Source of the DNA: Monocercomonoides exilis PA203
Taxonomy: Eukaryota > Protista > Preaxostyla
DNA: 64,000 nucleotides
Reading direction: 5' to 3'
NCBI GenBank assembly: GCA_001643675.2
Contig: LSRY02000072.1
Span: 62,001-126,000 of the forward strand
Below, piece by piece: positions 5,209 through 63,426 of this stretch. Under the pieces are notes generated by a model that made no database searches, was not told where the DNA came from, and worked only from the letters and a program-made list of their open reading frames with translations. Both the position numbers and the translations under genes were made by a program. Positions within the stretch are counted from its first letter, which is position 1. Each line of letters starts with the position of its first letter.

Positions 5209-6707
5209 AGAAGAAGAAGAAGAAGAAATTGGAGAAGGAGAAGGGGAAGAGGAGGAGGAAGAAGAAGGGGAAGGAGAAGAAGAAGAAAGAAAAGAAATGG
5301 AAGAAGAAGAAGAAGAATTAGTAGAAGTAAAAAGAGGAAGGTTTTTGTTTGAAGGAGAAGAAGAGAGAAGAGAAAGAGAAGGGCCAACTTCAGATGAGTG
5401 TATGGGGATGGAAAGAGAGATGGGGGAAGAAGGGGAAGAAGAAGAAGAAGAAAGAGAAGAAGAAGAGAAGAAGGAAGAAGAAGGAGAAAGAGAAGGAGAA
5501 TTTAATGTTTGTTCTTCTTTTTCTCTTTCTCTTTCTCTTTCTCTTTCTCTTTCTCTTTCTCTTTCTCTTTCTCTTTCTCCTTTGTTATCGAAATCAGCAT
5601 CATAGAAAGGGATTTCTTTCATTTCTTCTCTTTCTCTTTCTTCTTCTTCTTCTTCTCTTTCTCCTTCTTCATTAATGTTGTTGGGGAAATTCGCTTGCTT
5701 ATCATTTTCTTTGTTGTTTGTGTCTGAACATTCACTGCTCAATTGAGAGATGGTTGGGATGATGGCAGATGTGGTCACTGATATCTGAGGAGAAGAGGAA
5801 GAAGAGGAAGAAGAAGATGATGATGATGATGAAGATGAAGAAGAAGGAAGAGAAAGAGGAAAAGGAGGAGGAGAAACAGGAGAATGAGAAGGAGAAGAAG
5901 AAGGAAAAGAAGAAGAAATACAGCAATTATTGTTATGATTATTAGCATTGTTATTATTATTGAACTTGCTCACGTTCTTCTTCGAACTTCGTTTTTTCTG
6001 ATTGAAAGAAAGAATCGTGGGCAAAACCTGCACAGAATGTGAAGAAAGCAAAAGATGGTGTTTTGTTTGCGAATAAAAAGAAGGCCGAAAAAGATGGGAA
6101 TGAACGGGCGATGGAGAAAAGAGGTGGAAGGCTCCTGAAGAGGAGGAGGAGGAAGAAGAGGAAGACGAAGAAGAAGAAGAAGATGAAGAAGAAGAAGGTG
6201 ACGCAATCGAATTGTTTGTGTGTGCTATGCGAAGAGGAGGAAGTTTGGAAATTGAAGTTAACACGTTTTTATTTCCATACCTTCTTTCTCTTTCTCTTTC
6301 TCTCTCTTTCTCCTTCTCTTTCTCCTTCTCTTTCTCTTTCTCCTTTTCTTCTTCTCTTCTTCTCTTCTTCTTCTTCTTCTCCTGTCTAATTTCCTTCCGC
6401 CTCCTCCTCTCCATCGCCTTCTCCAACCTCCACCTCCTCCACAGCTCTTTCTCTTCCTCCACAAACTCCTCGACTTCTGCCAAATAACACAGAAAATTCG
6501 ATGTCTTCTTCTTTTTCCCGCTTTCTTCGCTTTCTTCGCTTTCTTCGCTTTCTTCGTGGAGATTGCCGCTTCTTCTTCTTCTTCTCTTCTGAAGCACGCC
6601 AAATTCAGCTAAAGAAGAGGTCTGTTGAAGAGAATGGGGGTGGAGCGAAGGAGGGAAGGGAGAAAGAGAAGAAGAAGGAAAAGAAGAGGAAGAGGAAGAG
6701 GAAGAAG

Positions 6708-6738
<31 letters not shown>

Positions 6739-8006
6739 TGGAGACAAAGAAAATGTTTGGTTGAATTGTGGAGTGTTTTGAGGAGGAACATGAGAAGAAG
6801 AAGGATTCAATGAAGAAGAAGAAGAAAGACATTTTGTTTCACTTGAAGCAGAAAATGATGAAGAAGAAGAAGAAGATGAAGATGAAGAAGGAAAAGATGA
6901 AGAAGGAGAAAGCGGAGAAGGAGAAAGAGAAGAAGAAGAAGAGGGGTTAGAAGAAGAAGAAGAAGGATTATTTTGATTATTATTATTATTATTATTATTT
7001 GAAGAAGAAGAAGAAGAAGAAGAACCCAAAGAAGCATTAAAAGGCAGAGAAGAAGAAGGAGAAGCGAAAATTGAAGGCGAATTTGGCGGAGAAAGCTCAG
7101 AAAGACAAGAAGAAGAGGTGTAAGAAATGAGATGCACATCGGGCGACTCTTCAGTTTGAGAGGAATGGCGAGAAGAAAGGCGAGAGAGATGAGGAGAAAG
7201 ATGGAGGGAAGAGGGAGAAGAGGGAAAAGAGGTAGAGGAAGAGGAAGAGGAAGATGAATTAACCATTTCTTTCTGTTTATCTTGTTTTTCCCGTCTTTCC
7301 AGTGAAATTGTCTGAGTTTCGATGTTTTGTGGGTTCTCTTTGTTCTCTTTGTTCTCTTTGTATTGTGCTGAATTATTTGGCAGTTGAGACTTGAAATCGA
7401 GCCATTTCAGATAGAATTGCAGAAATGGATGCAAAAGATAAGCAAATTTCGCATCGTTCAGCTCTTCTTCTGTGAAATGAGAGAGTATTTCCTGTTTGGT
7501 TGTTTGGGGGATTCTTGAAGAAGATGTTGAAGATGCTGAGGAGGCTGAGGGGGCTGAAGAAGAAGAGGAAGAAGAGGAAGAAGAGGAAGAAGAAGGATTT
7601 GATGAAGGGGGATTTGAAAAAGAAATTCCATTGTTGTTATTATTACTCTTTCCTTCTCTTTCACCGTTAGCCGATAAAACCGCCCTCCCCACATTTTTAT
7701 TTTTGACATGTTTCATGTCAAATTTCACATCTTCATTCAAATCTGCCTCTGCAAATGGCGAAAGCACCGCCAACAACGCGGGAGAAAGAAAAATCGGGTG
7801 ATTTTTTGGGAGAAGCGATGAAGCAGCGACGAAAGCAGACAAAACCAAGCAGACTGAGCAAATGTGGGAGATGGAAGGCGAATGGGCGAGTAAAGAGAAG
7901 AGCGAAGGGACGAAGGCGAAATGCGGGTGGAACAAAGAGCAGAGGAGGGTGAGAGAGGCACAGGGGTCGATGAAAGGGGAAGAGGAAAAGGAGGAAGGGG
8001 AAAGGA

Positions 8007-8037
<31 letters not shown>

Positions 8038-11000
8038 AGAGGAAGAAGAAGAATGAGAATAGGAAGGGCCGAATAGCATTTCAGAAGGAGAGACGCGAGA
8101 AAAAGGGGGGAGGACAGAAGAAGAGGAAGAAGAAGAGGAAGGGAAGAATTGAGAAGGAGAAGGGGCGAAGGATGTGGGGAAAGAGGCGAAGGAAGAGGAA
8201 GAAGAGAAAGAGGACGAGAAAGAAGGGAAAGAAGAAGAGGAAGAGAAAGGAAGAAAAGGTGAAAAATCTTTTGTTCTGAACGTTGAAGAACGCCAAAAAC
8301 TAGAGCGATACGAGGAAGAGTGAGAAAGAGAAGAAGAATGAGATATGCGGAGGAGGAGCAGGAGGAGGCGTAGAAGGGTGTGAAGATGGGAAATGATGGC
8401 TGGAGTGGAGAGGGAGGTGGAGGAGACGAAGAGATTGCCACTGAAAACTCTGTTTGGGGAAAAAAAATGGAGTGGAGAAGAAGAAGAAGAAGAAGGAAAA
8501 AAAAAAGAGAGAGAGAGAGAGAGGAAGGGAAAAGTGGAGAAAGAAATTTATATGGAAAATAAGGGGGAAAAACAAATAAATAAATAAATAAATAATAAAG
8601 AGTAAGAAGAAATAAACAGAAAAGAAAAAAAAGATGAAAGAAAAAAATAAAAATAAAAATTTAATAAAAAATTAAAGTAAATTAATTCGATTTGATTTAG
8701 TAACACACTGCAATCTGAATGAAAGGGCAGGAAGGAGAATAAAAGAGCGCATGAGGATGCGAATGGAGCAGAAGAACAAGGAATTCATCACACGGCATAT
8801 CATTGTGGGCTGATGGGGGTGGAAGAGATGGAAGGGGAAAAAAGAAGAGGAGGAGGAAGAAGAGGAAGAGGAAGAGGAGAATGAAGAAGAAGAAGAGGAG
8901 GAGGAGGAGGAAGAAGAAGATGATGATGATGATGATGTTGCTGTTGCTGTTGTTGAATGAAGTGGTTGATGATTGGAATGTTTTCGTTTCTTTTGTTGTT
9001 TTGCCTTCTTTGAATTTCCTTCTTTTGACTCAGGTGAATTGGGAGATGTCGAATGAAAAGAAGGAGGAGAAGAAGAAGAAGGCGAATGTGATGATAGAAG
9101 AACGGTGGGTGATTGCTCAGATGATATTGAAGATGAAGAGGAAGAGGAGGAGGAGGAAGATGATGATGATGTGGAAGACGATGGAGGAGGCCGTGGTGAT
9201 GCTGATGTTGATGTTGATGTTGATGATGTGGAAGAAGAGGTTGAAGAAGATGTTGAAGAAGAGGTTGAAGAAGTTGTCGTTGTAGATGAAGAAGAAGAAG
9301 AAGAAGAAACAGCTGAAGCCATCGAAGAAGACGACGATGAATTGTCAGCAGCAGAAGAAATGGCAGAGGCAGAAGAGAAAGCGGAAAGCGGAAGAGAAGC
9401 AAGTATTTCCGCCAGTCCAGAGGAATGCGACGAAGAAAACTGCATCGAAGGGGAAGAAGGCGAGAGCGGGGGTTGATTGGAGGCGAAGGAGGAGGGAGGG
9501 TTGGCAGAGAAAGAAGAGCGAGAAGAAGAAGAAGAAATGGCGTTGTCTCCATTTGCCTCAGAAGAGCAGTTCTGTTTGGACGTTGTTGTTCTGGTTGTTT
9601 CACTGTCGTCGCTGTCGAAAGGGGAAAGAGAAGGAGGGAAGAGGTTGGTGGATTGGGAGAGGGGGGGAGAAGAAGGAAGAGGAAGAGAAGGCAAATGGCT
9701 TGAAGAAGAAGAAGATTTACTGTCAATGTTACAAGAAGGAGAACTAACAATAGGAGGTTGTTGTGATTGTGATTGAGATTGGAGTGGCTGAGGCTTTTTC
9801 TGTTTGAATAAAATGTCTTTCTCTTTTGATGATGTGTTCGCTTCTTTCGTCACTTCTTCTTCTGCTGCCGCTTTCGCATTTTCTGTATATGTCTGAATTT
9901 CTTTTCCTTTCTTTTCTCTTTCTTTCTCTTTCTCTTTCTCTTTCTCTTCTTCCTTTTCCTTTTCCTTTTCCTTTTCCTTTTTCTCTTCTTCTCCTTTTCC
10001 TTCTTCTTCTTCTTCTTCTGTCTTCTCTTCCTCACTCTCACTTTCGCTCTTCTCTTCCTCCCACAATGCATCTTCCAAAAGATCTTCCTCCAAAAACAGC
10101 TCCATTGCCTTCTTCACTCTCTTCATGTCGCTCCTCTCCTCCTCTTCTTCCTCTCCTCCTCCACTTCCATTCGAATTTGCTGAAGCATTCATTGAATTTG
10201 CATTTAGCGCTTTTGTTCCTTCTTCTTCATTTCCTTCTCCTTTCCTCTCTCTCTTTTTCGGATCTGCCCTTCTGATCTCCTTCCCTCTCTTCAAGTCTTC
10301 CTCGTCTTGTCTTCGCTGCTTCCTCCTCTCTGCCTCTCGAAACATGAGAGATTTTTCTCTCTCTTCTTCATCTGCGATCGCATCCATAAGCTCTTTCTCA
10401 AATTCGGGATCCTCTTGCCCTTTCAAATGGCTGCCTTTTTGCTCTTCGTATCGCACCCAGTCGTCCATGTCAACTAGAAGATCAGCTTGATCGATCCATT
10501 TTACTGACAAAAAAGTTCTGGTGGAATTGAAAAAAAAGTTAATATTTAATGTATTGCCATATTAATATGCAAGTTTTCAAAAATTGTAAATAAAGAAAAT
10601 TGCAAGGTTGCAAACTGTATTGCTTCGCAAACGCATTTTCGAACAGTGGCATTTTTGTGCTGTTAACAAATGACAAAACGTTTCAATTCCAGTTAACAAT
10701 AAATAATGAAAAAAATAATAACTATCATACATTTAATAGTCGAAGGAATAATCGAAATACGTCCACGTGACGAGCTTCAATATCTCTGGGAAGATATCCT
10801 GTTTCAAGAAATGCTAGAATGCAAAATGCTTTTGTCTATTTCAAGAAAAGAAGGTTATAATGAAAATATAAATAAAAGCAAAACTCGTATTTGCTGAGAA
10901 AATGCTCGAGAAAGCAAATTTAGCAAGAATTGAAATGCTCCAGTTTCAAGAAAAGGAGATATCGATAAAAGTTGATCTTTATTTAAAAATTTAAATTGTT

Positions 11001-11130
11001 ATTCTTGTATAACATTACAGAAAAATTACAAACTATGGTGACAAATTCGTAAGAGTTTGTCCAATAACGAATTAAGTAGATCCTCGGAATATGAAAACTT
11101 GGTGCTAATTGGCGTTAATATATCAAATTT
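1..11130 (-). CDS. Very large multi-exon Ser/Glu-rich low-complexity protein with interspersed ARM/HEAT-like helical segments; 3' end lies outside the window, 5' start uncertain (about 11.1-11.4 kb)
   Basis: One minus frame (codons at plus positions 3k+1) has no ORF-track entry over 1-8449, and every spot I translated is open, e.g. SPLSLSLYILECIARKGAIDDDLLFNSFRFYFESIS near 1-130 and LIKQLLSFSHSLDIQVSVSALYLLYAIVKEATIAQTEALCEMDVVDVLINLVKK at 2220-2390. Intron 8450-8708 (GTGTGT...AACAG) joins it in phase to ORF 8672-10510. Small GT-AG-bounded upstream exons lie near 10760-10800 (DIFPEILKLVTWT), 10885-10975 (DQLLSISPFLETGAFQFLLNLLSRAF) and 11035-11130. Confidence 0.75.
2793..2846 (+). repeat. (GAT)n microsatellite encoding poly-Ser (TCA) on the minus strand
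   Basis: Directly visible; one of many triplet and hexamer tracts in 1-10300. Confidence 0.9.
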
Positions 11131-11717
11131 CTATTAATCATTTATATTTTTCCAGTTCAATCAAAATCAAAGCATAAATATAAAAGCATATACATTTGTG
11201 TCAATCTCCCTGAAATTGGTTGTTTTAGAACAGCAATTCCCCATTAAAACATGTTTTTATTAAAATTGATAGAAATTATTTCTTATGCCTTATCTGATCA
11301 GAATGAGAATTCATTCAGAAAAGAAACATATTATTGAAAAAGTCAAACTGTTTTTCATGAAAATGTTTGTATCTTTTTTATTTCTTCTCATAAAGTTTTA
11401 ATATTTTTTACCATTGTTTCAAGAACTTTTAATCAAGAAAAAAATACTTTGGTTCGATTCAAATGATAAAAAAATCGACAATAATATGTGGAAAAATGTG
11501 AAAAGAATAAGTTTATTGCAAAGTGGCAAAAAGTTGAAAAACCTTGATATTTTTTTATATTTCCAATAATTTTGAAAAAAAGTTGGAGTGAATCAAAAAT
11601 AACCTTTTGATAAATGTAAATATTGGAAAAATACAAATTAACTTGTTTCATTGCATTTTAATCTTTTATTATTGTTATTTTTTTATCAAAAAACATAATT
11701 GTTCTTGTAATAGCAGG

Positions 11718-13656
11718 CTAGTCCTTTTCATCCCATCTTAAGCATTTTGTGAGAAGATAAAACAGAATCGCAAGCAAATTGCAGACGGCAAGCAAAATAA
11801 TAAATGTGTTGGCTGAGCCATCAATAACCCCTCCAGGCAGCCATATGTTCATTCTACGACAAAGAAAAAAGCAATGAATAAAAAAAAATCATAAAATAAA
11901 TTATAAATTCGTTTAATATATGCAAAATTGAAATAAAACAAAGAAAAAAAATTAGATATTAATGCCTTGAAACAAAAATACAAATAGAAAAACATTCATT
12001 TGAATGCAAATAACAATTCACCGCATATCCAAAAGCACACCCCCAGCACGACGGGATCATCTGCGCCATCATCATCACACACGTTACAATCGACAAATCT
12101 TTTGCGAGCACGGACAGATGATTGGAATATCTTGAGAGAGACACAGAAAGAGAAGCCAAATGGTTTGTGTGCAAGTCAAGCAGAGTGGAGTGGTAGTGCG
12201 ACGTTGTGTGGAGGAGGAAGAGAGAAAGATCGCCGACGGAACGGAAAAATGGAAAGAGGAACGGAGAAATAAAATGTTTTGTTTGGGCTTTTTTGGAAGA
12301 GAAGGAGTGGATTGTGCTGTCTGAAAAACGGAAAAGAGAGAGAAAGAGAGAGAGAAATTGTACGCATTAATAAAAGTGTATTAAAAAATATTGAAAAAGA
12401 ATAAAGATAATTCGAAATTAAGAAAAAGATTGAAATCAAAGGGAAAAAACTGTGTTTGATGGCAATCACAAATACAGACAAACATATGAAAGCCAATTTC
12501 TATCTTATTCACTTTTATTTCAACAAAATCTACTAATTTTATTTTTTATATTTTTCTATAATTTCACCGCAATCTCTTCCTCCTTCACCAAATTCTATGA
12601 CACACTTGATCTTGGGGTGATTGCTGATATAATTTCTGGAAGAGGCGCCAAACATCTTCTGATTGCATTCACTTTGCGCCTGTCTGCCTCAAATCGCAGA
12701 AGCAGCTCGTCTTGTTCACCAACTCCTTGTAGCGACTGGCTGAGCGAACGGAGGGCAGATAACTGAAATGTCAAAATAATTAGAGTTTTGAGGAATGTGA
12801 TTAAAATGGGAAGATGTTTGATGATAAATTGATGAAAATTTTATTGCGAAAAAAAAGAAAAGAAAGGTTAGGCAAATTTGAATATAAAAGTGTACAGAAG
12901 GAAGACAGGAGAAAAGATTTTTTTAAATTTTCCTCCAAAAAATATGTTGACAATAATTCATACTTCAGTTTCAAATTGTTCAACAAGTGGTTTGAATTGG
13001 ATAACTAATGTATTCAGTAAAGAATAAAGTACATACGCAGGAGATATCATTTTGCTTCTTCGTAAAAATAAATTGGTCGTGTTAGAAGAAGAAGCATTTT
13101 CTCTTTTTAAAGGTGGTTTTGTCTGATGATTCCTTTTGATTGGAGGAAATCGTGGAAGAGAATTATCAAAGACCTTAATATCCTAAAAAATGTGAAATTT
13201 TCCGATAAAATTATAAAAAGTTCGATTATGAATGTATTACTTTTTTCAATGTTCAAAATATCAAACATCTCTATATGTTTCATTTATATCAATCCAAGCT
13301 TGTTCGATAACTGCAGCAAATTGACGGTGAAATGTCACCAAAACTGTCTCTCCAAGTACGAATGATATTGGAATTTCATCTCCATTCTCATTTTTAGAAT
13401 AGCAAATTAGAAAAAGGTATGTATCAAATAGCTCCCACTTTGCGCTTGAATCTTGATTAATAATATCATCAACTGTCAGGGGATGTAAATTGAAAATATA
13501 AGCTAATTTTTTCATCTCTTCACGAGAGGGTTCTCCTTGTAAGTCAATCCATAAAGGTTTTTCTTTTGAAGGACAAGTACATTTCATGTATGAAACAAAA
13601 TCTGTAAAAGAATTAAAGTCAAGAATGTTTTCATCTGAGCATATTGAAATAAGCAT
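11718..13656 (-). CDS. CorA/Mrs2/Alr1-family Mg2+ transporter (multi-exon)
   Basis: N-terminal LWIDLQGEPSREEMKKLAYIFNLHPLTVDDII...AKWELFDTYLF is typical of CorA. The signature WG-M-N is rebuilt across intron 11854-12040 (TGG GG|gtgtgc...tag|A ATG AAC). Two hydrophobic helices flank the motif; TAG stop at 11718-11720. Confidence 0.9.
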
Positions 13657-13826
13657 TTATATCATGATTTTATTTTCTGACCCAATAAAGCAACAATAAC
13701 TATTTTTTGAGATTAAATGAAACGAAATATGGTATTATCAATTGATCTTATAGTTAAGATAAAAGGTGATTAATTTTATATTTACAAACTTTGAGACAAG
13801 TTATATTTCATTTTTTGAATAGACAT

Positions 13827-14415
13827 ATGGCTCATAGACAAGAAAGAAGGCCCGAGGATGAAATCTTTTATTCTGAAAAAGTGTGCGACGATATGTATGA
13901 ATATCGGTTTGTGAGAAATGGATTGCTTTATTTTTAATATAATTGGTGATTTATATTTGAAAAATTGTATTTGAATTATTTTTTGAAGTCATGTAATTTT
14001 ACCGAAAGAAATTGCAGCCAAAGGTGTGTAAATATCCTTAAAAATCATTTTTTGAATTATAACTTTGTAATCAGTTCCAAAAGATCGTCTTATGAGTGAA
14101 GAAGAATGGAGATCTATTGGCATACAGCAATCTCAGGGGTTTGCACTTTTTGAAATTTTTCGAATTTAACAATTTCATCTTTCTTTAGATGGGTATGTTT
14201 TCTTTTATTATCTTGACATAAAGTATTAAATATTAAAAACGTTGTGGTTTTAATTGCTTTTTATCCGCGTATTCAAATTATTGTGAAGGGTATGGTCACT
14301 CATTTTTAATATTTTCTTATTTCATATGTGTTTATTATTTAAAGTTAACTTTGATCGTCATGCACCTGAGCCTCATATAATCCTTTTCAGAAGGCCCCTT
14401 CCAAAAGCATCGTAA
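13827..14415 (+). CDS. CKS1: Cyclin-dependent kinase regulatory subunit Cks1/Suc1 (6 exons, including 4-nt and 1-nt microexons)
   Basis: Exons 13827-13906, 13989-14023, 14075-14138, 14189-14192, 14289 and 14345-14415 give [84 protein letters not shown]. This carries the YEYRHVxLP, LMSExEWRxxGxQQSxGW and HxPEPHxxLFRRP motifs. Not in the ORF track. Confidence 0.95.
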
Positions 14416-15211
14416 TTTCAACAGAATTAACATGCTTTTCATTAAATTATTAATTTCCTCTTTACACAAAAAAAGATAATCACTTCATTTTTATTTATTG
14501 TAATTCATATATATTTTTTGTTTAAAAGTTAATAAAAGGAAATAATTTTTAAAAACTTTTAATTCAATTATGCGTAATAAGAAAGTTCTGATAATGTTAT
14601 CACTGAAATTCTGGTGATTTGCATTTTTCCATCAAAAACATTCCATAAAAATTGGGTGAAAAAAAACCATCACTTATAAATCTTCGTTGTTGCCCTGGAG
14701 TTTCATTAACGAACAAATACATAAAATATATAAACTCATTTCATTTTCATTCCATTAAGATCAAAAATTATAAACTAAACAGAATAGAAACTTTTCTCAT
14801 TTTAACATTTTCATTTAAAGAAACTTAATAAAAATGTAATACATATAAAAATTATAAAAATGGAGATGTATAAAAATGGGAAAAATGCATATAATTCTCA
14901 GAAAGATGACATAAACAAGATGAAAATTTCGACAGCAACAGACAAAAAAAAAGTAAATGGAAAATGATGTGCATTTCATCGAGATTAAGTAAAGCAAGCC
15001 GAGATGATGTAAGTGTAAATTTTTCTCTTAAATTCAAGGTTTAAGTAAAATTCAATGACCATGAAAGTTAAAGGCAATAATAATGGTGGCAGCAAAAAAA
15101 AGAAGACGAAAATTTTGTTGGAAACGAAAATTTTTCAGAAGAAGAAAAAAAACAAGAACAAGAACAAGGCAATTGAAGGGATTAGATTCGGTCTCAAATA
15201 AATTCATTCTG

Positions 15212-18200
15212 TCACAATGCATAGCCAACCATGTCTTGTGTCACATCATCACTTTCCATCTGGATCTTCTTTCTCTCATCGTCCAGAAGCGGATCCCTCG
15301 CCACAATTCTTTTAAAGTTCGACTTCTTCCACTTCTTTTTGCAGCAGCCACAGAACAATTTCCCGCTGAATATGAATTCCACCACTGGTACAAGCTTCCC
15401 AATGTAGTTCAAATACACAAATGTTCCTCCTAATGCTGTTATCAGCCCCACAGCCGATGTCTTAAATGACCTCGTCGTCACTGTCATCGTCTGCGACAGC
15501 TCCACAAACACCTCCACGCCCACACTCAGCATGAAATTGATATCGCTGTTCTCTTCTTGAGAACCAGGTCTGATTGAAATCCTGTTTGCTTCGTGGCCCA
15601 TCTGCACAATATGCTTCCACTTGTTCTCTTCGTACTTGCTAACCATCAGCTCAGCAACAACCTGGGTTTGTTCTCCGCCTTTGAAAACATGCGATGAATC
15701 TCCATCAAAATGGCTTTCTGCCTGTGATTTGTATGTTGCATCAAGGAAGAAGTAGCCTTTCTGTTGGGCTACTCCAGAATCAACAGAGATGAATGCGTCT
15801 ATTCCATAGAATAGTGCATCTTTCTCTTTTGAATAGAACGAAAGAAGTTTCACTCGTCGATCAACTGCATCAATGCTGATATTCTCCGCAGAAAGTTGAA
15901 TTGTGCAATCTGCTGTTGACGTGAATAATTTGTTTGGAGACGGAGATTGATAACATATTGGCGCGATAGCAGCTGACTCATTCGGATAAATATCTGAAAA
16001 GATACATTTAGAAGCATTATAAAAGATAGTTGATTTAACATAAATTTTGAAAGGAAGAAAAAGAATGAAATAAAATAAAATTGAATTCTGAAAACAGAAG
16101 GCAAACCCAATGGATCATAAGAAGTCTTTCCTATTCCAAGAAGTGGAGAGCATTCTCCTTGTGCTTCAATTTGCTTATCCTTCACATCCTTCACGCATTC
16201 CCCTGAATAATCTCTCAGTCGAATTAAAAATTCCATCTTTTTATTTGAAAACTTATCCAGCGTTATGTTCTGCGATTTCGGATCTACATACAATCGATTT
16301 TCAAGCGTGTTTATCAAAAAGAACAGCACAACTACCGCAGAAGCAGCGCCAACCACAAAGCAAATGCCAATAATCGAAACGCATCCGCCATAACTCGTCT
16401 TCCTCACAATCTTCACTGCCTTGTGTGTTTTCTCATCGAGGCTGTTCTTGTAGGAGTCTGAGTATTGATCCAGCATGTACAGCTTGTCTCTAGTCGGCAG
16501 GCAAAAACACACAAAAGCTACAACCAAGCCAAGCGCCAATGAAACTCCATAAAATAATATTGTGAACATTGTCTCTTTCTTCGAATTCGGATCATACGAT
16601 TTTGGCTGTTCTGTGCATTTGAAAGGCTCTCTGAGTAAAGTGTTGTTGTTTGCAGCTGACCCGACAAGGCAGCTGCTGTTTGAAGCACACACATTGCAGC
16701 CATCGCTCCCGGCGTTTGGTTGATATGCTCCGCCTGTGCAAGGAATACACGCACTTATCGAAGACCCTGATCCCCATAAATAAGTGCCAGCCGGACATTT
16801 TTCGCATTCTGTTTGATTGAAATGAGATGAATATGTTCCGCTCTCGCAGAGAGTGCACTGATTTGTGTTTGTGTCGAAAAATGATCCAGGCGAGCAGCCA
16901 GAAAGATGACTTTTCAATTTGATTTTGGTTAGTTTATTTGTTGCAATGGGCAATGGTGTCATTCCTTCACTCACTGCATATCCTCCGAGGCAATACAGCG
17001 AATCGAGCATGAAAGCGCAACTGCCATGCACTAAAGGATAATCCTTTTCCTCTCTGCCTTCGTCATATTTGTGTGTTGCAAGTTTGATTTCTCCGTGTTC
17101 ATCGAAAGTGAATACAGAAAGATACGATTTCTTTGCCACTCCAGATTCTTCTCCGCCAACTATAAATCCAACTTCTCCATCTCCAACAACAACTCCAGAG
17201 CTGCATATCGGATAGTATGGCCCCGACAAGCTTACCCAATCATCAAAAATGCTTGTGACTTTTAGTGGATGTACTCTGCAGCCTTCATTGGGATTTTCCC
17301 CATTATCTCCCCCGCAAATAAAAAGATGTGGAGCTGGCTGTTCACCGTCTTCCTTTTCTTCTGCCTTCTTCAAATCTTTCGACTTGTTCTGTGCATTTTT
17401 CAAATGTTGATGATTGCTTTTGTTCGAATCAATTGGTTCTTCTCTGCGAAAAATGCTTTTCACAAAAACAGTTGGTCTCTGAACCGCAATGCGCATTTTC
17501 ATAACTTTGAACCATTCTGACGTTGCGAAATTGAATGTCCAGATGTCGTGAAGCAGATTCTTGTTGATATCACAACCTCCAACAATATACAAAATAGACT
17601 CATAAATTGTGGCACCAGAACGGCACATTTTCGGCGGCCTTTTCTCGCCTTTCACTTTTATCTTCCTCCAAGAATATGTCGCTTTATTATACTCCCAAAG
17701 ATCATTGCTCATCGTCAGAAAATCTCCGTTGCTGCTATAAGTTGCTCCGCCAAACACAAAAATTCTTCCATTCAATGCGACAACTGCTGCTTCACCAAGC
17801 AACGGTTCTCCCTCGCTTTGAAATTCTGATTCGCCAAACTCCATCCATATCATCGTCCGAAAATCGAATTTTTTGCTTACTGGCACCATTTTGTTCAGTT
17901 CGGGGTTGTACCCACCGATGACAGCTATTTCTCCACTCAATTCAGCAAGATGATGTTTCAATACTGGAAGTGATACATAACAATCACCTGGTGACAGAAC
18001 ATTTACATGGTTGCTTTGACTGCTACGAAGAAAAGAGGGAGAAGCAGATGTGTTATCCAAAAATCTGTGCACACATCTACTATCCTGAGGTGTTGTCCAA
18101 TCTTCTTTGTTCAGAAAACAAATTTCATTTGATATGTATGACTGGATTTTTCCACCAAATGCATAAATAGTTCCTTCTTCATCCACAGTACACGAGGCCC

Positions 18201-19182
18201 CCACGTATCCGATTGTCCAGCCGTCAAAGTAAAATGGAACAAGAGTTGCATTTTTAACAGCAGAGTTGAGACCAGCTTCCGTGAGGTTCAAGATTAATGC
18301 TTTGTCTAACGCTTCAGTAAATGATCCATCCTTTCCGCTCCATGCAATTTCATAACACTCTGTTTCTGAAACATAACTTGTAAAACCAGATCGATAAATT
18401 GCTCCATTAAAATACTCATCATAAACTATTTCAATTAATTGGCAATCATCAGGATTTGCCAAGTTTATTCTGTAAGCACATGGTTTTTCTTTAATATTAC
18501 TTGTCAGTCCCCCAAAAATAAACAAATAGCTTTTAAATATGCACGCTCCTCCATCTCGCATCGGAGGTGGATTTTTGGTGGGATTATTTTTTCGTAAGCA
18601 ACGCCACAAAAATGTCTGTTTGTCCATTTCCCATATGTCATTTAACATTCCACGAGATCCTTGTCCTCCGAAAATGTAAACATGTGACTTTGTTTCTGCT
18701 TTGTAAGAACCATATCTCTCGCATGGTATACTATCTGACTGCTGAATAACTTTCCATGAAATTCGTTCAAAATCATATGAAAGCAACTCGTTAGACAGCC
18801 CATGACTACTAAGGCCTCCCCAAACATACACATCATCTTTAACGCAAAATGATACGCACATGTATCGGTCAGGAAGAACAACAAGATTTGTTGATGGTAC
18901 TATATTCCACAATTTCCGGTTCAAATCAAAAAAATATGAATCTTTCATGACAATTCCATCACGATCCCTTCCGCCTCCAATGAGCAGACCTTTTCTTTGT
19001 GGGGTATTGATGTACTGAATGAATGAACCTTCGCGTGGATAAGGAGGAGAGCCACTGCCTGGAATACTTTCAACTTCTTCCACCAAATCCAAATCTTCAG
19101 GGAAAGCAATTTGAACAAAAAGTACAACAAAAATTCTGAAAAGTGTAATAAATTTAAAACTAATTGCTGTTGTAAACTGCAT
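15212..19182 (-). CDS. About 1285-aa membrane protein: signal peptide, Kelch beta-propellers, Cys-rich (ephrin-receptor-like/GCC2-GCC3) repeats, three TM segments
   Basis: ORFs 15850-19182 and 15212-15853 are joined by intron 15994-16106 (GTTTGC...CAG). Many Kelch motifs (YVWGG, YIFGG, FIFGG, FVFGG...NDLWEY), CxxCxxGTY repeats (CTLCESGTYS, CEKCPAGTY, CIPCTGGAYQ) and hydrophobic segments near the C-terminus. Confidence 0.85.
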
Positions 19183-20206: not shown

Positions 20207-20797
20207 ATTTTTTTTTCATATGGATAATTTATTGTTTTTTATATGTAAGAAACAAAAGAAATAAACAGCTACGTGGAAATGTTCTTTTTTTAAAACAAAG
20301 AAAAAATGAATGATGTTTTAAGATTTTAAAGTAATTTTTCGATTTATAAAACGAAATATTGTTAAATATCCATTGGGAATTTTATTTTTCATTAATATTT
20401 TCTGTTCCAAGTTTTTTTTTTTGTTATTATTTTTCTCATTTTTCTTTTTATTATTCGAAAATTCATTGAATGAAAATATTTGACTTTTATGATATACTGA
20501 TCCTTTTTGCTACCAAACTTTTTTTCGATTTTTGATCAAAATAAAAATATCAGTGGGATTCTGAAAAAATGAACAATAATCATCGATTCATACAGCTTTT
20601 GATGGTGCTTAAAAATAGAAAAAATTATTTAAACGAAAACTCATCGAAATTTTAAATTTGATCAAAACTCGAATAAAGTGTGATTGAAAAAATAATTAGC
20701 TAACTCCTAATATTTTCCTGGAATTTTTATCAGAAAATTTCAAAGCTGAACTGTTATATGGACACTGTCATTCATTTTCCTGTAAATAATATTTATA

Positions 20798-21067
20798 TGG
20801 GGGAAAATATGAACTTTCAAGCTTTTTATGCACAAAGAACAAAAAAATTGTTTCACTCATAACTTTTCTTAACTTTGTCAGATTTCAAAATAAATCAGAT
20901 TCTCATATCCTAAAACTGATATCATTGACACTACAACACAATGTTTTGTGTCATCACAAATATTTCAATAAGGAAAGAAATTTTACTTGGATTTTTTGAT
21001 CAAAATATGACAATAAAAAGTGCATAATTTTTTAATGAAAAAACATGAAGTTACATATTTTCCCCCA
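20798..21067. mobile_element. MITE, family M2 (270 bp)
   Basis: TIR TGGGGGAAAATATG...CATATTTTCCCCCA with TA on both sides; a diverged inverted copy is at 62134-62402. Confidence 0.7.
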
Positions 21068-21594
21068 TATATGTATTTTTTTTTTTTTTTAACAATGGAA
21101 TTATTATTCAATAATTTTTTGAAAAGTTTCTTTTGTTAGATTTTCAGGAGAAAATAAACATTGTGTATTTTCATCCAGTTTTCATTCCTACTCATAAAAT
21201 ATCATCAACTTGGATGCAAATGCTTGACAATATAAATGTGCACATTCTTTTGAATTTTGGTGAATTGGAATGAAAATTTTTTTAAAATATTCAATTTTCA
21301 TTTTCATTTGAAAAAAATGTGAAATGAACTTTTCAAAAAATGTGAACATATAAAAAGTATTATTAAAAAAATAACACACACCAAAAAGGAATATTTATTT
21401 TGTGTTTGTCTCAAACATGGGAAATTGCTGCAACTCTTTTGATAATTTTCATTCCAATAATAATAAACTGCTCATTGGCAACAAAACCTTTCAATGATCC
21501 ACTCTCCGAAAAAAGGAATTATTTCTAAAATAATTGTACATATTGTTCAATAACTCAAAAAAATATTTATTATGCCAAATAAATTAAAAAAATA

Positions 21595-21972
21595 CAGTTT
21601 GCACAAAAAATTCCGGACATCGCAAAAAATATCGAACAAGATCGATATCTCAATAACCGCAAGAAGAAAAATTCTGACAAATTTCCTCAAAATATATCTC
21701 ATCAATACAAACTCACATGACATACAAGACTTTCAGGACAGCTTCGCTTGAGGTCAGAGAAAATTATTATTTTCATTTCGGAGAAACTCAAAATATTATT
21801 TCTCCTGGATATCAATCATTGATTTTTTCTGAGCTCAAGCGAAGCTGTCCTGAAAGTCTTGTATGTCACGTGAGTTTGTATTGATGATATATATTTTGAG
21901 GAAATCTAACAGAATTATTCTTTTTGCAATTATTGAGATATCGATCTTGTCCTGTATTTTTTGCACAATCTG
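21595..21972. mobile_element. Long-TIR (foldback) MITE, family M4, Tc1/mariner-like termini
   Basis: TA|CAGTTTG...CACAATCTG|TA with about 150-bp imperfect arms (CAAGACTTTCAGGACAGCTTCGCTTGAG vs CTCAAGCGAAGCTGTCCTGAAAGTCTTG); same family as 62899-63255. Confidence 0.8.
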
Positions 21973-22219
21973 TATGAACAAATTTAATAAATAATAAAAA
22001 ATATCAGAAAACAATAAAATTAAAAACACTTCAATTAATATAACAGCATATTAATAATATTAATAAAAAATCCAATAAAATAATCGTTTTAACAAAAAAG
22101 AATTCAAGAAAGAATGATGTTATTAATACTTGATTTTAAAAAAAATTAATAATTTCGGAATGTTTCGGAATAGAAAAATTCATTGGTAACTTTCATTTTG
22201 TTCATTGTTACATATGACA

Positions 22220-22341
22220 TAAGCCTGGGTGACTTAAGACTTTTGTCTTAAGGTAATCTACTTTTGACTGACTTTAAAAATGCTTGAAGTCAAAAAGCAT
22301 TTATATCTCATCAAAATTATTCAAAAGTTTAACAGTTTATC
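22220..22341 (+). repeat. 122-bp hAT A end, directly repeated at 26416-26537
   Basis: The copies are identical except T22254 vs C26450; both are followed by GTTCACAC. Confidence 0.95.
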
Positions 22342-25300
22342 GTTCACACTAGGCCTGGTTGACGGATTGAAAAATAGACGGTTACGTCAGTCAACAGAAT
22401 TTTTTCACGTCAATTGATTTTTTTTGTCTCTCTTGTTTTTTGAAACAATAAACATATATTTTTTAGAATAAAATTGTATGGCTATTTTCAATAATGATTA
22501 GTAATGAATTTCATTTTTCCTTTAAAAAAAAAAACACTAAACCATAATTCATATATCGCTCAATATGAGAAAAATAATTTCGCAATTTCACGCTTGCAGT
22601 ATATGAACGCTAATTGGTTTGCATATTATTGTATTTGCCTATTATCTGTAAATGTTTTTCTTTTTGTGAATCAGTGGAAATTTTAGAAAATAAACAAATA
22701 GTGGAATATCTTATTATCCTTGATGAATATCCAGTTTGCTTAACGGATTCATAAAGAAAGTCCACAAGAAGAAGAGACGTAAAAGTGAAAATAGAGAGTC
22801 AGATGATGAAACACTTGAAAAAGGAAGAAATTAGAAATTGGATTGAAGAAAACAGTTGCCAATGGGATAAGTTATAGATATTGACTTAAAAATAGGTTCT
22901 GAAGGTTTGCTATCGTTGTTTTTTTGAAGTGATTATTCTTTTTTATTCAGGCTATTGAAAGAATGAGTGATTATATGGCTTTGAATAAGGAAAGCAGGGA
23001 AGAAAAATGAAAAGAAGGTTGTTGAAATATAAGATTAATCGAAGATGCCTGGCGTTGGGCTTTGATGATGAATAATTTTTGAGGAAAAAAGATTTTTTGT
23101 GAAAGAGGGGAAGCGAAAAAAGAAGAGATTAAATGAAAAAGGGATTCACATATGTTTCCTATTTTTTGTTGGTGAGGGGGGATAATTGAGCTGACAGTGA
23201 AAAAGATTCAGAGGTTTCTCCTCACCAGAAGACAAAATCCTGAAGAGGAGAATTACAACGAATTTCTCCGTTGGTGAAAATTGAAATTTATGTTCTCAAC
23301 TTTCAACCTTCAATCAACTCATTCATTCAACACCTTCAAAATCTTCATCAAATTATCACAACATTTCACACGCTTCTTCTTCTTCTTCTTCTTCTTCTTC
23401 ATTCACATCATCTGAATGAATTTCTTCATATTTGATATCTGCATCAGAGATCATGAATGAAATGAAGAAGAAACGGAGAAATTATTCATCCAAAGGAAGT
23501 TTTCATAAATTTTAATTAGAATAAGAAGAATGAAAGACGAGGCGAAAGAGAAAGAGAAAGAGAATGAAGAGCGTGTTTTGAGAGGAGAACTGGAAAGGAA
23601 ATGGAATCGAGAAGATGGAAGAGGGTTTTTTGAATGAAAGGAAGAAGATGATAATGAATACGAAGATGAAGAAGAACATGAAGCTGGTTGAGAGCCAGCC
23701 ACCAACTGCGAAAGGTACTAAACAGAGCAAAAAGAAGAGCAACGCTGCCAGGGAAACTCAAACGAGATAAAAGGAGCGAAGTCCATTCCACATGACTCAG
23801 AAAACCGCTTTGTATCTCATTCAACTACCTTCTGTCTTTGGCAGCTTGTTGTTTCAACATGGAACAATGAATGACTTTTTCATTTATTTGAGTGTGTGTA
23901 TGCTTCGTTGTAACATGTGCAATCTTCACTATCCTTTTCATTGGCAAATGAATGTTCTACCTCTTCTTCTCCTTCTCTTTCTCATTCTCTTTCTGCATCG
24001 TCCATCCCAGCTTCCACTTCTCCGCTTCAATTTCTTTATTATTCATTCTCTCTCTCAGCTGAATGTGCTTAAACGGATTAAAACCACAACAGAAGACAAG
24101 TGCACAAAGGTTAAAAAGCAACAGGAAAGTGACAAACTGAAGAATTGTGTGTGGAGAAAATAACAAATACGAAGAAGAATACGAAGAGGAATATGAAAAA
24201 GAAGGAGAAGAAGAGGTGGGGGAGCTGGCTGTTTGTGGGAAAGCATCAGGAAAGAGATGGGAATGAGCACAAGGCGAGCTAACAACCGACGAATAAGATG
24301 AAGAAGCCAATGGAAATATGGAATTATAATTGGAGAGAGAAGGCGACAGATCTGAGACAGCAGAAGAAGAGAAAGAAAAAGATACGCAAAAGGGAGGAGA
24401 GGAAGAGGAAAGCGAATAAGAGCCATTGGAATTCCTGTTTTGAGCAATCTCGTTATTCGGGGTTGAAGTATTAAAGAAGAGAGAAAAGCCACAACTGGAC
24501 ATATCATGTGCTGCATTTGGAGAGTGAAGCGTGGTCGATACAAAAGGCAGCTGAGACGCGCTGCTTTGGAATTCGACTGATGAATTGAGAAGAAACGAAG
24601 AAAAGGAAAAAGATGAAGAAGGATATGAAAATGATAGCGATGACGATTTTCACTTGAGTCATTCTGTTGTTTCATTTCTTCTTTTTCTTCAACACCTTCT
24701 TCTTCATCGGTTGTTGTGCTTTCATCCATTCCAATATGAATGATGTCTGACGTGATGAGTGCTGCCATCAAAAGCGACAGGTCGTCTTTGCTGAGAGAGA
24801 AGCAGTCGTCGATGGTGAACAGCACGGAATCTCTCAGATGGTCGTCAGAAAAGAAATGGATGACAGGCTGTGGGATGAGGGGAAGAATAGCAACGATCGG
24901 TGGAATGGGTGTGGGAAAGGACAACAGCTCCGTTGGGGAAGAAGAAAGTTAAAAAGAAGAAGATAGTGAAGAAGGAAAAGATGCTGTTATAGAATAGGAA
25001 ATATCAGTGAAGAGTTAAAATAAAATTGAAAAATCAACAAACAATAACGGAATTCAGAAAGTGAAAAGATATTCACAAAGATGTGTGGAAGACAGAATGC
25101 ATGATATAGAAGATATGTTGTAAGCTATAAAAGCACTTCGAACATATTCATTGAAAAGAAGTGAGATTTAATTGAAAAGAGCAACAAACGCAACACATAT
25201 TCTCCTTCTCGTTTACTTCCATCACGAATATTGCTTTCAGTTTCCTCATTCAGATGTTCTTCTTTTTATTTGCTCATTGATATTAACGCTTTACAAGAAC

Positions 25301-25456
25301 TATCTTAAAATATGCAGTATATTCATGAAAATATTGATTGATATTTTTGTGAAAATCAAAAAAGAAAACAGTTGATTTGTTATTTATTTCAAAATAATTG
25401 ATTGTATTGTGAAATGAAAAAACCTTTGTCAAAAGACAAAATAGTTAAAAGAGCAT

Positions 25457-26053
25457 TCAGTGCTTCAAAGATAGAGAATGCCTTCTGTCACCAGACATCC
25501 TTTTTGTTCTTGAAAAGACACATTCGCAGCTTGCTTCGCTGCATTGAGATGAAACAAATGAAAAAAAGATGTTTGAGAGAATTGTTAGAAGAAGTTCTTT
25601 CTTTGTGATCTCTGCGTAGAACTTTTGTGTGTCGCCTTCGAATATGAAGCTTGGTGCTTCATTCAAAAAATCCAGAAACAATTTGAAACATAAATCCCTG
25701 ATCTCTTTTGATTGATTTGATTACACTGTCACAACGTATATTTCAAAACTTTGTCTAATTCGTATATCCCAGTAAAATCATATGGAACATACCACTTGAT
25801 AACAAACTTCTTTCTCTTTTTCTGGTTCCAGACGGGAAATCAAACTAATCTTCTGGTTTGAAAACAGCACCTCCACATCATTTGTGCTATATTCTATTTC
25901 ATCTGTTCTATCTTCCATTGAATCTTCAAGTGAGTCATGAGTATTATCTTCGAAAACAAGTATTTGAGAAGATGTCAAGCATGTTGAAGAAAAACTTTCA
26001 GAAGAAGAAGAGCAGGAGGAAGCAGCTGAATGAATTGAAGAAGACTCATTCAT
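25457..26053 (-). pseudogene. hAT transposase remnant (N-terminal acidic segment plus C-terminal dimerisation domain), left-arm copy
   Basis: SQCSEASCECVFSRTKRMSGDRRHSLS resembles the hAT C-terminal motif SxxxERxFS...RxxL. The catalytic core is absent, with only about 100 bp between the two pieces. Confidence 0.75.
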
Positions 26054-26415
26054 GGTTTCATCTTTTTTCTTTTCACTTTATTTTGTTAATCCGGTCATTT
26101 GAAGATACACTTTAAAGTGTGTTTTAGCTATTCAAAGTGAATAAATCAATCAAAAAGCGATGCATTTAATATGTTCATCCATAAAGGCATTCTGAAATTT
26201 ACTCAAATGATTTCAACATTCAATTATGTTGGGTGTTGACACAAAAATTTGACAAAGTCAAAAAAAGATCGACCAGTCTGTGACTTTGGCAATTTCCAAA
26301 AAATTGATCCGGTCAAAACCCATTAACGTGTTCTTTATTTCTTAAAAAAAGTGTCGATTATTTTTTGTTCGATTAAAATTTTTCATTTTCCTTTAATTCA
26401 ATTTAGTGTGTGAAC

Positions 26416-29400
26416 TAAGCCTGGGTGACTTAAGACTTTTGTCTTAAGGCAATCTACTTTTGACTGACTTTAAAAATGCTTGAAGTCAAAAAGCATTTAT
26501 ATCTCATCAAAATTATTCAAAAGTTTAACAGTTTATCGTTCACACACTAAATTGAATTAAAGGAAAATGAAAAATTTTAATCGAACAAAAAATAATCGAC
26601 ACTTTTTTTAAGAAATAAAGAACACGTTAATGGGTTTTGACCGGATCAATTTTTTGGAAATTGCCAAAGTCACAGACTGGTCGATCTTTTTTTGACTTTG
26701 TCAAATTTTTGTGTCAACACCCAACATAATTGAATGTTGAAATCATTTGAGTAAATTTCAGAATGCCTTTATGGATGAACATATTAAATGCATCGCTTTT
26801 TGATTGATTTATTCACTTTGAATAGCTAAAACACACTTTAAAGTGTATCTTCAAATGACCGGATTAACAAAATAAAGTGAAAAGAAAAAAGATGAAACCA
26901 TGAATGAGTCTTCTTCAATTCATTCAGCTGCTTCCTCCTGCTCTTCTTCTTCTGAAAGTTTTTCTTCAACATGCTTGACATCTTCTCAAATACTTGTTTT
27001 CGAAGATAATACTCATGACTCACTTGAAGATTCAATGGAAGATAGAACAGATGAAATAGAATATAGCACAAATGATGTGGAGGTGCTGTTTTCAAACCAG
27101 AAGATTAGTTTGATTTCCGTCTGGAACCAGAAAAAGAGAAAGAAGTTTGTTATCAAGTGGTATGTTCCATATGATTTTACTGGGATATACGAATTAGACA
27201 AAGTTTTGAAATATACGTTGTGACAGTGTAATCAAATCAATCAAAAGAGATCAGGGATTTATGTTTCAAATTGTTTCTGGATTTTTGAATGAAGCACCAA
27301 GCTTCATATTCGAAGGCGACACACAAAAGTTCTACGCAGAGATCACAAAGAAAGAACTTCTTCTAACAATTCTCTCAAACATCTTTTTTCATTTGTTTCA
27401 TCTCAATGCAGCGAAGCAAGCTGCGAATGTGTCTTTCAAGAACAAAAAGGATGTCTGGTGACAGAAGGCATTCTCTATCTTTGAAGCACTGAATGCTCTT
27501 TTAACTATTTTGTCTTTTGACAAAGGTTTTTCATTTCACAATACAATCAATTATTTTGAAATAAATAACAAATCAACTGTTTTCTTTTTTGATTTTCACA
27601 AAAATATCAATCAATATTTTCATGAATATACTGCATATTTTAAGATAGTTCTTGTAAAGCGTTAATATCAATGAGCAAATAAAAAGAAGAACATCTGAAT
27701 GAGGAAACTGAAAGCAATATTCGTGATGGAAGTAAACGAGAAGGAGAATATGTGTTGCGTTTGTTGCTCTTTTCAATTAAATCTCACTTCTTTTCAATGA
27801 ATATGTTCGAAGTGCTTTTATAGCTTACAACATATCTTCTATATCATGCATTCTGTCTTCCACACATCTTTGTGAATATCTTTTCACTTTCTGAATTCCG
27901 TTATTGTTTGTTGATTTTTCAATTTTATTTTAACTCTTCACTGATATTTCCTATTCTATAACAGCATCTTTTCCTTCTTCACTATCTTCTTCTTTTTAAC
28001 TTTCTTCTTCCCCAACGGAGCTGTTGTCCTTTCCCACACCCATTCCACCGATCGTTGCTATTCTTCCCCTCATCCCACAGCCTGTCATCCATTTCTTTTC
28101 TGACGACCATCTGAGAGATTCCGTGCTGTTCACCATCGACGACTGCTTCTCTCTCAGCAAAGACGACCTGTCGCTTTTGATGGCAGCACTCATCACGTCA
28201 GACATCATTCATATTGGAATGGATGAAAGCACAACAACCGATGAAGAAGAAGGTGTTGAAGAAAAAGAAGAAATGAAACAACAGAATGACTCAAGTGAAA
28301 ATCGTCATCGCTATCATTTTCATATCCTTCTTCATCTTTTTCCTTTTCTTCGTTTCTTCTCAATTCATCAGTCGAATTCCAAAGCAGCGCGTCTCAGCTG
28401 CCTTTTGTATCGACCACGCTTCACTCTCCAAATGCAGCACATGATATGTCCAGTTGTGGCTTTTCTCTCTTCTTTAATACTTCAACCCCGAATAACGAGA
28501 TTGCTCAAAACAGGAATTCCAATGGCTCTTATTCGCTTTCCTCTTCCTCTCCTCCCTTTGCGTATCTTTTTCTTTCTCTTCTTCTGCTGTCTCAGATCTG
28601 TCGCCTTCTCTCCAATTATAATTCCATATTTCCATTGGCTTCTTCATCTTATTCGTCGGTTGTTAGCTCGCCTTGTGCTCATTCCCATCTCTTTCCTGAT
28701 GCTTTCCCACAAACAGCCAGCTCCCCCACCTCTTCTTCTCCTTCTTTTTCATATTCCTCTTCGTATTCTTCTTCGTATTTGTTATTTTCTCCACACACAA
28801 TTCTTCAGTTTGTCACTTTCCTGTTGCTTTTTAACCTTTGTGCACTTGTCTTCTGTTGTGGTTTTAATCCGTTTAAGCACATTCAGCTGAGAGAGAGAAT
28901 GAATAATAAAGAAATTGAAGCGGAGAAGTGGAAGCTGGGATGGACGATGCAGAAAGAGAATGAGAAAGAGAAGGAGAAGAAGAGGTAGAACATTCATTTG
29001 CCAATGAAAAGGATAGTGAAGATTGCACATGTTACAACGAAGCATACACACACTCAAATAAATGAAAAAGTCATTCATTGTTCCATGTTGAAACAACAAG
29101 CTGCCAAAGACAGAAGGTAGTTGAATGAGATACAAAGCGGTTTTCTGAGTCATGTGGAATGGACTTCGCTCCTTTTATCTCGTTTGAGTTTCCCTGGCAG
29201 CGTTGCTCTTCTTTTTGCTCTGTTTAGTACCTTTCGCAGTTGGTGGCTGGCTCTCAACCAGCTTCATGTTCTTCTTCATCTTCGTATTCATTATCATCTT
29301 CTTCCTTTCATTCAAAAAACCCTCTTCCATCTTCTCGATTCCATTTCCTTTCCAGTTCTCCTCTCAAAACACGCTCTTCATTCTCTTTCTCTTTCTCTTT

Positions 29401-30595
29401 CGCCTCGTCTTTCATTCTTCTTATTCTAATTAAAATTTATGAAAACTTCCTTTGGATGAATAATTTCTCCGTTTCTTCTTCATTTCATTCATGATCTCTG
29501 ATGCAGATATCAAATATGAAGAAATTCATTCAGATGATGTGAATGAAGAAGAAGAAGAAGAAGAAGAAGAAGCGTGTGAAATGTTGTGATAATTTGATGA
29601 AGATTTTGAAGGTGTTGAATGAATGAGTTGATTGAAGGTTGAAAGTTGAGAACATAAATTTCAATTTTCACCAACGGAGAAATTCGTTGTAATTCTCCTC
29701 TTCAGGATTTTGTCTTCTGGTGAGGAGAAACCTCTGAATCTTTTTCACTGTCAGCTCAATTATCCCCCCTCACCAACAAAAAATAGGAAACATATGTGAA
29801 TCCCTTTTTCATTTAATCTCTTCTTTTTTCGCTTCCCCTCTTTCACAAAAAATCTTTTTTCCTCAAAAATTATTCATCATCAAAGCCCAACGCCAGGCAT
29901 CTTCGATTAATCTTATATTTCAACAACCTTCTTTTCATTTTTCTTCCCTGCTTTCCTTATTCAAAGCCATATAATCACTCATTCTTTCAATAGCCTGAAT
30001 AAAAAAGAATAATCACTTCAAAAAAACAACGATAGCAAACCTTCAGAACCTATTTTTAAGTCAATATCTATAACTTATCCCATTGGCAACTGTTTTCTTC
30101 AATCCAATTTCTAATTTCTTCCTTTTTCAAGTGTTTCATCATCTGACTCTCTATTTTCACTTTTACGTCTCTTCTTCTTGTGGACTTTCTTTATGAATCC
30201 GTTAAGCAAACTGGATATTCATCAAGGATAATAAGATATTCCACTATTTGTTTATTTTCTAAAATTTCCACTGATTCACAAAAAGAAAAACATTTACAGA
30301 TAATAGGCAAATACAATAATATGCAAACCAATTAGCGTTCATATACTGCAAGCGTGAAATTGCGAAATTATTTTTCTCATATTGAGCGATATATGAATTA
30401 TGGTTTAGTGTTTTTTTTTTTAAAGGAAAAATGAAATTCATTACTAATCATTATTGAAAATAGCCATACAATTTTATTCTAAAAAATATATGTTTATTGT
30501 TTCAAAAAACAAGAGAGACAAAAAAAATCAATTGACGTGAAAAAATTCTGTTGACTGACGTAACCGTCTATTTTTCAATCCGTCAACCAGGCCTA
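26416..30595 (+). mobile_element. Unit-length hAT element (4180 bp), internally deleted, carrying cargo DNA
   Basis: Starts with the A end (TAAGCCTGGGTGAC) and finishes with the B end. Subterminal TGAC/GTCA motifs cluster at both ends; transposase remnants lie at 26900-27490. Confidence 0.88.
26900..27491 (+). pseudogene. hAT transposase remnant, right-arm copy with extra frameshifts
   Basis: Mirror image of 25457-26053; 1-bp deletions shift the frame inside the dimerisation motif. Confidence 0.7.
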
Positions 30596-30766
30596 ATATG
30601 ACAATTTAAAGAATTAATAAATAGGTTCAAATATCACCCAAATCAAGTTTTGATTAAATCAATTGTTGACCCATTATTAATTTTTAACATTTTGTTTTAT
30701 TGATTCACATTTTGTAACAAGCAATTACCATAAAAATTACTGAATATAATCATAAAATAACATTAA

Positions 30767-31138
30767 ATGTTCATTGAAGAAGAACTCCAAGAAATTGAAA
30801 AAGAGTATTCGCCATATTTACACAATTTTTCAATTGTTAAAAAATCGGAGACAGAAGCAAAATTTTCTCTGACTACGTTTGAAGATGAAATATTTGTTAT
30901 AAATTTGAGCATCGATGGATATGAGGTTTGAAAGACGATTGGTAGAAATTGTTCATGAATGTTTGAGCTCTCAACTTGACATTTTTCACAAAAGGTTGTT
31001 GATGGACCTTTAAAAGGTAATGTTTATGAATCATTCGAAGGTTTTATACGTTCAAGCAGTAAGCATTATCAATCGATGCAGAATAAAATTTTTCTTGAAA
31101 GACTTTCGTTGTTATCAAAGGAAAAGGATCATCAGTAG
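30767..31138 (+). CDS. Small GSKIP-domain-like protein (100 aa, 2 exons)
   Basis: Exons 30767-30925 and 30995-31138 (intron GTTTGA...AAAG) give MFIEEELQEIEKEYSPYLHNFSIVKKSETEAKFSLTTFEDEIFVINLSIDGYE|VVDGPLKGNVYESFEGFIRSSSKHYQSMQNKIFLERLSLLSKEKDHQ*. The TxE..l.ls..Gy / YE....l...S..y.....L..L pattern resembles GSK3-interacting protein. Not in the ORF track. Confidence 0.65.
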
Positions 31139-62131: not shown

Positions 62132-62133
62132 TA

Positions 62134-62402: not shown

Positions 62403-62407
62403 AAATA

Positions 62408-63255: not shown

Positions 63256-63426
63256 TATCTTTATTTTCGAAATTCAATTTTGAAAAACATTAAACATTCA
63301 GTCTTGTAATAATGAACATTTGTTAAAAAAATTATATTTGAAATGAAATAAAAATTTTGCATTCATGAGAAAATCTTCGTTTTATTCCAGACTATTTATG
63401 TTGTCGTATCATAATTAGAATTTGAT

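Follow-up and report, generated by a model that had tools for sequence, protein, structure and literature searches.

A composite hAT element in the oxymonad Monocercomonoides exilis, very probably formed by self-insertion

Introduction

The maize double Ds (state I Ds), reportedly described by Doring et al. 1984, a work cited in PMC3260210, is said to be a Ds with a reversed second copy inside. A standard Ac/Ds element has its competent ends on one chromatid (PMC3239180), and sister-chromatid transposition (SCT) in maize needs two elements whose 5' and 3' ends lie in direct orientation (PMC3239180, PMC3744419). In Drosophila, hybrid element insertion, which a passage of PMC3744419 credits to Gray 1996 and Preston 1996, lets opposite ends of one element, each on a different sister chromatid, behave as a single transposon. 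Pairs of directly oriented ends cause sister fusion and breakage in maize, where all breakers have multiple ends (PMC3239180, PMC3260210), and structures carrying such ends are thought to be selected against (PMC3260210).

An 8,392-bp composite hAT structure was analysed in M. exilis within a 64-kb window, i.e. the whole stretch of DNA studied. Its unit element is written A-t-C-B, A being the first 122 bp, t (GTTCACAC) an internal 8-bp target and C-B the remaining body. Like the maize double Ds, the locus holds a non-autonomous hAT element with an identical reversed copy inside, an internal 8-bp duplication, four ends and directly oriented end pairs, but its central segment points the other way, its internal 8-mers are inverted, three of its four ends face the same way and any breakage is putative. 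As assembled, no complete reversed copy within a direct TSD is present, the inner A facing the wrong way, and such a copy appears only when the 122-bp spacer is flipped. As in P-element hybrid insertion, in the outline given by the same passage of PMC3744419, sister ends of one element would have rearranged donor and target DNA; here, in contrast, the element is a protist hAT, the target lies inside the element and the end product alone is seen.

The products of Ac/Ds SCT and reversed-ends transposition (RET) share with this locus a hAT transposase, 8-bp target copies at two new junctions and an inverted duplication (PMC3744419, PMC3239180, bioRxiv 10.1101/2020.01.07.897926). SCT, however, leaves a central footprint, whereas no excision footprint was found at the duplication centre, which holds the element's own A end, and the progenitor would have been one normal element instead of a pair of directly oriented ends; for RET to fit, a tandem dimer must have existed beforehand. 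The Mu killer and Ac killer alleles are likewise long inverted duplications of a transposon including transposase remnants (bioRxiv 10.1101/2020.01.07.897926), but the remnants in M. exilis point away from the centre. Hairpin RNA of the killer type requires a transcript through the centre (bioRxiv 10.1101/2020.01.07.897926), and a literature search for the RNAi machinery of M. exilis found none described.

Results

The composite is bordered on both sides by ATATGACA as a direct repeat and reads TSD-A-t-B'C't'-A-t-C-B-TSD (Table 1), which is exactly the layout proposed in the initial annotation; all of its coordinates were recovered, as was the inverted 8-mer abutting a B terminus in one copy and an A terminus in the other. 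A2, t and the right arm together make up one unit-length element of 4.18 kb (26416-30595) with 14-bp TIRs matching at 12 of 14 positions. The B tips lie at 22350 (inverted) and 30595 and the second A begins exactly at the A tip, both new junctions (t/B and t'/A) thus falling on base-exact element tips with an 8-bp offset and no base lost. The chance of each 8-mer is 1e-5 to 4e-5, that of the outer TSD being about 4e-5 under the local composition, and no further A or B tips occur elsewhere in the 64-kb window.

Table 1. Features of the composite locus (window positions) and of the two full-length copies (positions within each locus)
Feature	Positions	Strand	Remark
Outer 8-bp TSD, left copy	22212-22219	+	ATATGACA
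A1	22220-22341	+	left terminal 122 bp of the element
A1 TIR	22220-22233		14 bp; subterminal TGAC motifs in A1
t	22342-22349	+	internal 8-bp target (unit positions 123-130), abuts B tip
Left arm	22350-26407	-	inverted element body C-B; right-end TIR at 22350-22363
Transposase gene 3' remnant, left arm	25438-26083	-	hAT; dimerisation-domain match
t'	26408-26415	-	second internal-target copy, inverted, abuts A tip
A2	26416-26537	+	122-bp spacer separating the arms
t, native site	26538-26545	+	as in the unit element
Right arm	26546-30595	+	element body C-B; right-end TIR at 30582-30595
Transposase gene 3' remnant, right arm	26870-27510	+	extra homopolymer deletions, probably consensus errors
Outer 8-bp TSD, right copy	30596-30603	+	
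L001 element copy	5532-14804		
L002 transposase	6081-8897	+	unbroken 939-codon frame

Including t, the inverted arms measure 4066 bp (22350-26415) and 4058 bp (26538-30595) and differ by no substitution and seven indels, all of them in homopolymer or dinucleotide runs, the right arm being the shorter at every one (7/7). At these sites the left arm agrees with the family copies fully in six cases and more closely in the seventh, and the indels look like consensus errors. A1 and A2 differ by a single substitution (T at 22254, C at 26450), which falls in the 3% of the duplication lying outside the arms (P about 0.03). This placement hints that the arms have been homogenised, either in vivo or by consensus calling; consequently their identity is a weak clock and does not date the event, which had been considered recent on this ground. 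At the substituted site most family copies, L001 and L002 included, carry A, so that two different derived letters occupy one site.

The insertion disrupts no long reading frame. A probable GSKIP-domain gene (30767-31135, + strand; PF05303, E 0.019 for the first exon) starts about 170 bp to the right of the element. A 1,110-codon frame at 15850-19182 (- strand) carries kelch-like repeats, a cysteine-rich stretch and membrane segments. Small fold-back (MITE-like) elements were also seen at 21622-21976 and 62888-63266, at 20784-21083 and 62117-62407, and at 61874-62134, two families each being present twice in the window with 72-81% identity.

A search of 1.84 billion proteins with a right-arm piece as query yielded a single true relative, P0001 (MONOS_12692 of Monocercomonoides exilis). 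Its hAT dimerisation domain is a weak match (PF05699, E 5e-4) that falls slightly short of the curated cut-off. Two other candidates, P0002 and P0003, were rejected as chance matches in unrelated contigs. P0001 is encoded twice on contig LSRY02000015.1, and each locus (L001 and L002) is a 9.27-kb element with the tips of the window element, a plain A...B layout and its own 8-bp TSD (CTGGTCAC in L001, GTTTAGGG in L002); the two are 99.8% identical, with 4 substitutions and 11 homopolymer indels between them. Their TIRs match at 13 of 14 positions, and TGAC motifs are clustered at both element ends. The window unit is 75-89% identical to these copies. The hAT identity and the unit A-t-C-B that had been proposed are both borne out, the former by the 8-bp TSDs, the TIRs, the transposase motifs and the hAT-type nearest clusters, the latter by A-t-C continuity on a public contig of about fivefold depth; dispersed, multi-copy occurrence is seen in the depth and in the two 9.27-kb copies with independent TSDs.

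The usual hAT TIR consensus is (T/C)A(A/G)NG, and the fifth base is C here in place of G. The Ac group prefers nTnnnnAn targets; t fits this pattern, and position 2 is T in all four family target 8-mers.

Relative to the full copies, the window unit lacks the 5' part of the transposase gene and most of the downstream cargo region, and its transposase remnant has two stops and one frameshift near 25469 that are common to both arms. It is an internally deleted, decayed, non-autonomous hAT derivative, and the composite product encodes nothing intact. Since the L001 and L002 copies have the plain A...B layout, these deletions and shared lesions mark the unit as a dead derivative and the palindrome as a local event. 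The public contigs branch near 26083 (window 26052-26282), one form probably leading to the full transposase. Another form, with a depth of about sixfold, agrees with the deleted form at 98%, which indicates several other copies of the deletion derivative.

In L002 the transposase occupies an unbroken frame in which the D, D, CxxH, RW and E motifs follow in hAT order (213, 275, 313, 365, 910), with a C-terminal dimerisation domain, and all ten of the named Atlas clusters nearest to it are hAT-type. It is annotated merely as the 299-aa fragment MONOS_12692. The first Met is codon 168, making an upstream exon likely; the pieces of the transposase were searched apart, and the start exon lies outside the gene model. 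The corresponding L001 frame is interrupted by three indels of one base each in homopolymers, which may reflect errors of the assembly. Downstream of the transposase, both full copies have cargo genes of low complexity (L001 10282-13172, L002 11457-13691), for which no Pfam match was found. Exact look-ups with window ORFs and cargo frames yielded neither a closer copy of the 4.18-kb derivative nor an empty site.

Ten right-arm pieces gave no Pfam match, owing to the frameshifts of this arm. Homologue searches with the 115-aa piece, P0001 and the transposase core returned no further relatives, and neither a PDB sequence search nor an HMMER search returned a transposase homologue. A single-sequence fold of the transposase was a poor model (pLDDT 41). 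The L002 protein is a candidate active, very divergent hAT transposase and is probably competent. Of what the initial annotation suggested looking for, two copies with their own 8-bp TSDs and, in one of them, an unbroken transposase frame were found. This frame is a candidate for the active transposase postulated elsewhere in the genome, and its action at the window locus is suggested by the shared tips. Recent activity of the family rests on L001 and L002, not on arm identity.

Neither the t/B nor the t'/A junction was found among the public contigs listed (four runs, X1-X4, of one sample) with a 4,601-letter query swamped by family copies, and the new junctions are neither shown nor excluded by these contigs. 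Depth of the own-allele contig, which is weak evidence since it does not equal copy number, was about 1.7-3x the lowest mode in X2 and X4, 1.2-2.1x in X3 and about 1x in X1.

Discussion

The composite is very probably a real self-insertion of a hAT derivative, and we hold with high confidence that a transposase made it. The strongest argument against an artefact is the anatomy, since a nanopore fold-back or a mis-joining of repeat copies that produced the second arm would have had to make both of its joints exactly at TIR tips, with an offset of 8 bp, and all this within an outer TSD that is intact. Such an origin would be in line with the seven uncorrected homopolymer deletions of the right arm, the multi-copy family, the absence of the new junctions among the public contigs listed and the own-allele depth of about 1x in X1. 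One-sided polishing of repeats is, on the other hand, described by the genome authors (PMC8767320), genuine inverted duplicates lose bases from their second arm in nanopore reads (PMC7229812), as would be expected here of a real one, and own-allele depth is about twofold in X2 and X4; an artefact is consequently improbable. That the palindrome is simply the normal structure of this element family is almost certainly wrong, and for the copies examined it is refuted, both full copies being plain A...B elements with their own TSDs and the contig of about fivefold depth carrying A-t-C continuity.

Each candidate product was built from the window's own blocks and compared with the observed string, and four routes reproduced it exactly: hybrid ends of sister chromatids with an inverting insertion, the use of reversed ends within a tandem dimer, nesting in reverse with a later inversion of the spacer, and an autointegration circle crossed into the element. 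The earlier remark that reversed-end transposition in a tandem dimer gives the same product is therefore correct, whereas the inverted 8-bp target duplication is not diagnostic, since nesting with a spacer flip, or the circle route, gives the same sequence. The weights given below to the two main routes are a matter of judgement, not computation.

Hybrid-end (sister chromatid) or reversed-end transposition is the leading route, held tentatively at close to an even chance. It matches the observed string in a single event, and the locus has opposite ends on the two halves of one staggered target, a configuration that is not unique to it. A non-autonomous 4.18-kb element flanked by 8-bp TSDs would have been the starting point. 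Transposase supplied in trans would bring together an A end and a B end belonging to two adjacent identical copies, the partner copy lying either on the sister chromatid, in the manner of P-element hybrid insertion, or in a head-to-tail dimer. After the flanks had been cut away, both ends, still tethered, would attack the copy from which the B end came, at a staggered 8-bp target 122 bp inside it; B would be joined to the left half of this target and A to its right half. The body C-B would thereby be inverted and duplicated in one step, with the target copies ending up inverted, and the reciprocal product (an empty site with footprint, or a circle) would segregate away or be lost. The reaction itself, its timing and its enzyme we infer. 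Both arms share many letters unlike other family copies, and at 26 of 29 sites the other copies agree with L002 against the window locus, so that the duplicated DNA was the locus's own copy or was later homogenised with it.

This one-step reaction is more economical than the two events needed if an excised element inserted in reverse at t of a sister copy, to produce the double-Ds layout of maize, A-t-(B'C't'A')-t-C-B, whose TSD is of the normal direct kind, and the 122-bp spacer was then flipped, by a later crossover between the 4-kb inverted arms or by the assembler. Nesting with a flip is nevertheless quite possible, if clearly below an even chance: standard transposition suffices, inversion between inverted Ds copies is frequent, recombination between such copies making up 11% of rearrangements in rice (PMC3239180), and the lone substitution outside the arms hints at sequence exchange between them. 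Since the 8-mer copies lie inside the 4-kb inverted arms, their inversion is compatible with it. The direction of the spacer is all that distinguishes the two isomers, whose words are identical up to a length of 4,067 bp; short reads and junction PCR therefore cannot separate them, there being no distinguishing word under 4,068 bp. The assembly was built on ONT reads with an N50 of 8.9 kb (PMC8767320) and the spacer lies 4.1 kb from unique flank, which makes its phasing feasible and a flip by the assembler unlikely. Far less probable is autointegration, in which an excised element would have formed an inversion circle A-t-B'-C'-t' and entered the retained sister copy by a crossover in the 130-bp A-t homology. 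Both Sleeping Beauty and piggyBac have been documented to form inversion circles (PMC3952818), but a crossover in the 30 times larger 4-kb C-B homology gives a different structure, and Sleeping Beauty avoids terminal regions (PMC3952818) while the present target is 122 bp from the tip.

Within the leading hybrid-end or reversed-end route, the narrower proposition that a single normal hAT element transposed by ends from both sister chromatids, with its own body as the target, is rather unlikely; because competent Ac/Ds ends lie on one chromatid, it would also be unlike the documented maize reaction. The sister-chromatid self-insertion first proposed for this locus thus yields the exact product and belongs to the leading route, which is itself not established, and of the precedents cited for it P-type hybrid insertion is a closer model than maize SCT with its need for directly oriented ends.

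Three ends, A at 22220, the inverted B at 22350 and A at 26416, are directly oriented and face the same way, and the composite may, like state-I Ds, be a substrate for chromosome breakage. The competence of A1 is doubtful, since no more than 130 bp of the left end is retained there; the other two ends are whole.

The kind of event is already known from double Ds, hybrid element insertion and reversed-ends transposition; what is new is an unusually complete example in a new lineage. As a caution for similar loci, an inverted TSD inside long inverted arms is no proof of alternative transposition. If a single element did use sister ends, the locus would be a natural P-type hybrid insertion by a hAT element outside plants and flies, and the same-chromatid restriction of Ac/Ds would not hold in this oxymonad. 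Taken as a real structure, it would mean that long palindromes arise in M. exilis through hAT transposases and that directly oriented ends can persist together in a structure there. The locus would then be a complete and still legible record of a transposon's attack on its own copy, in an organism distant from the maize and fly models.
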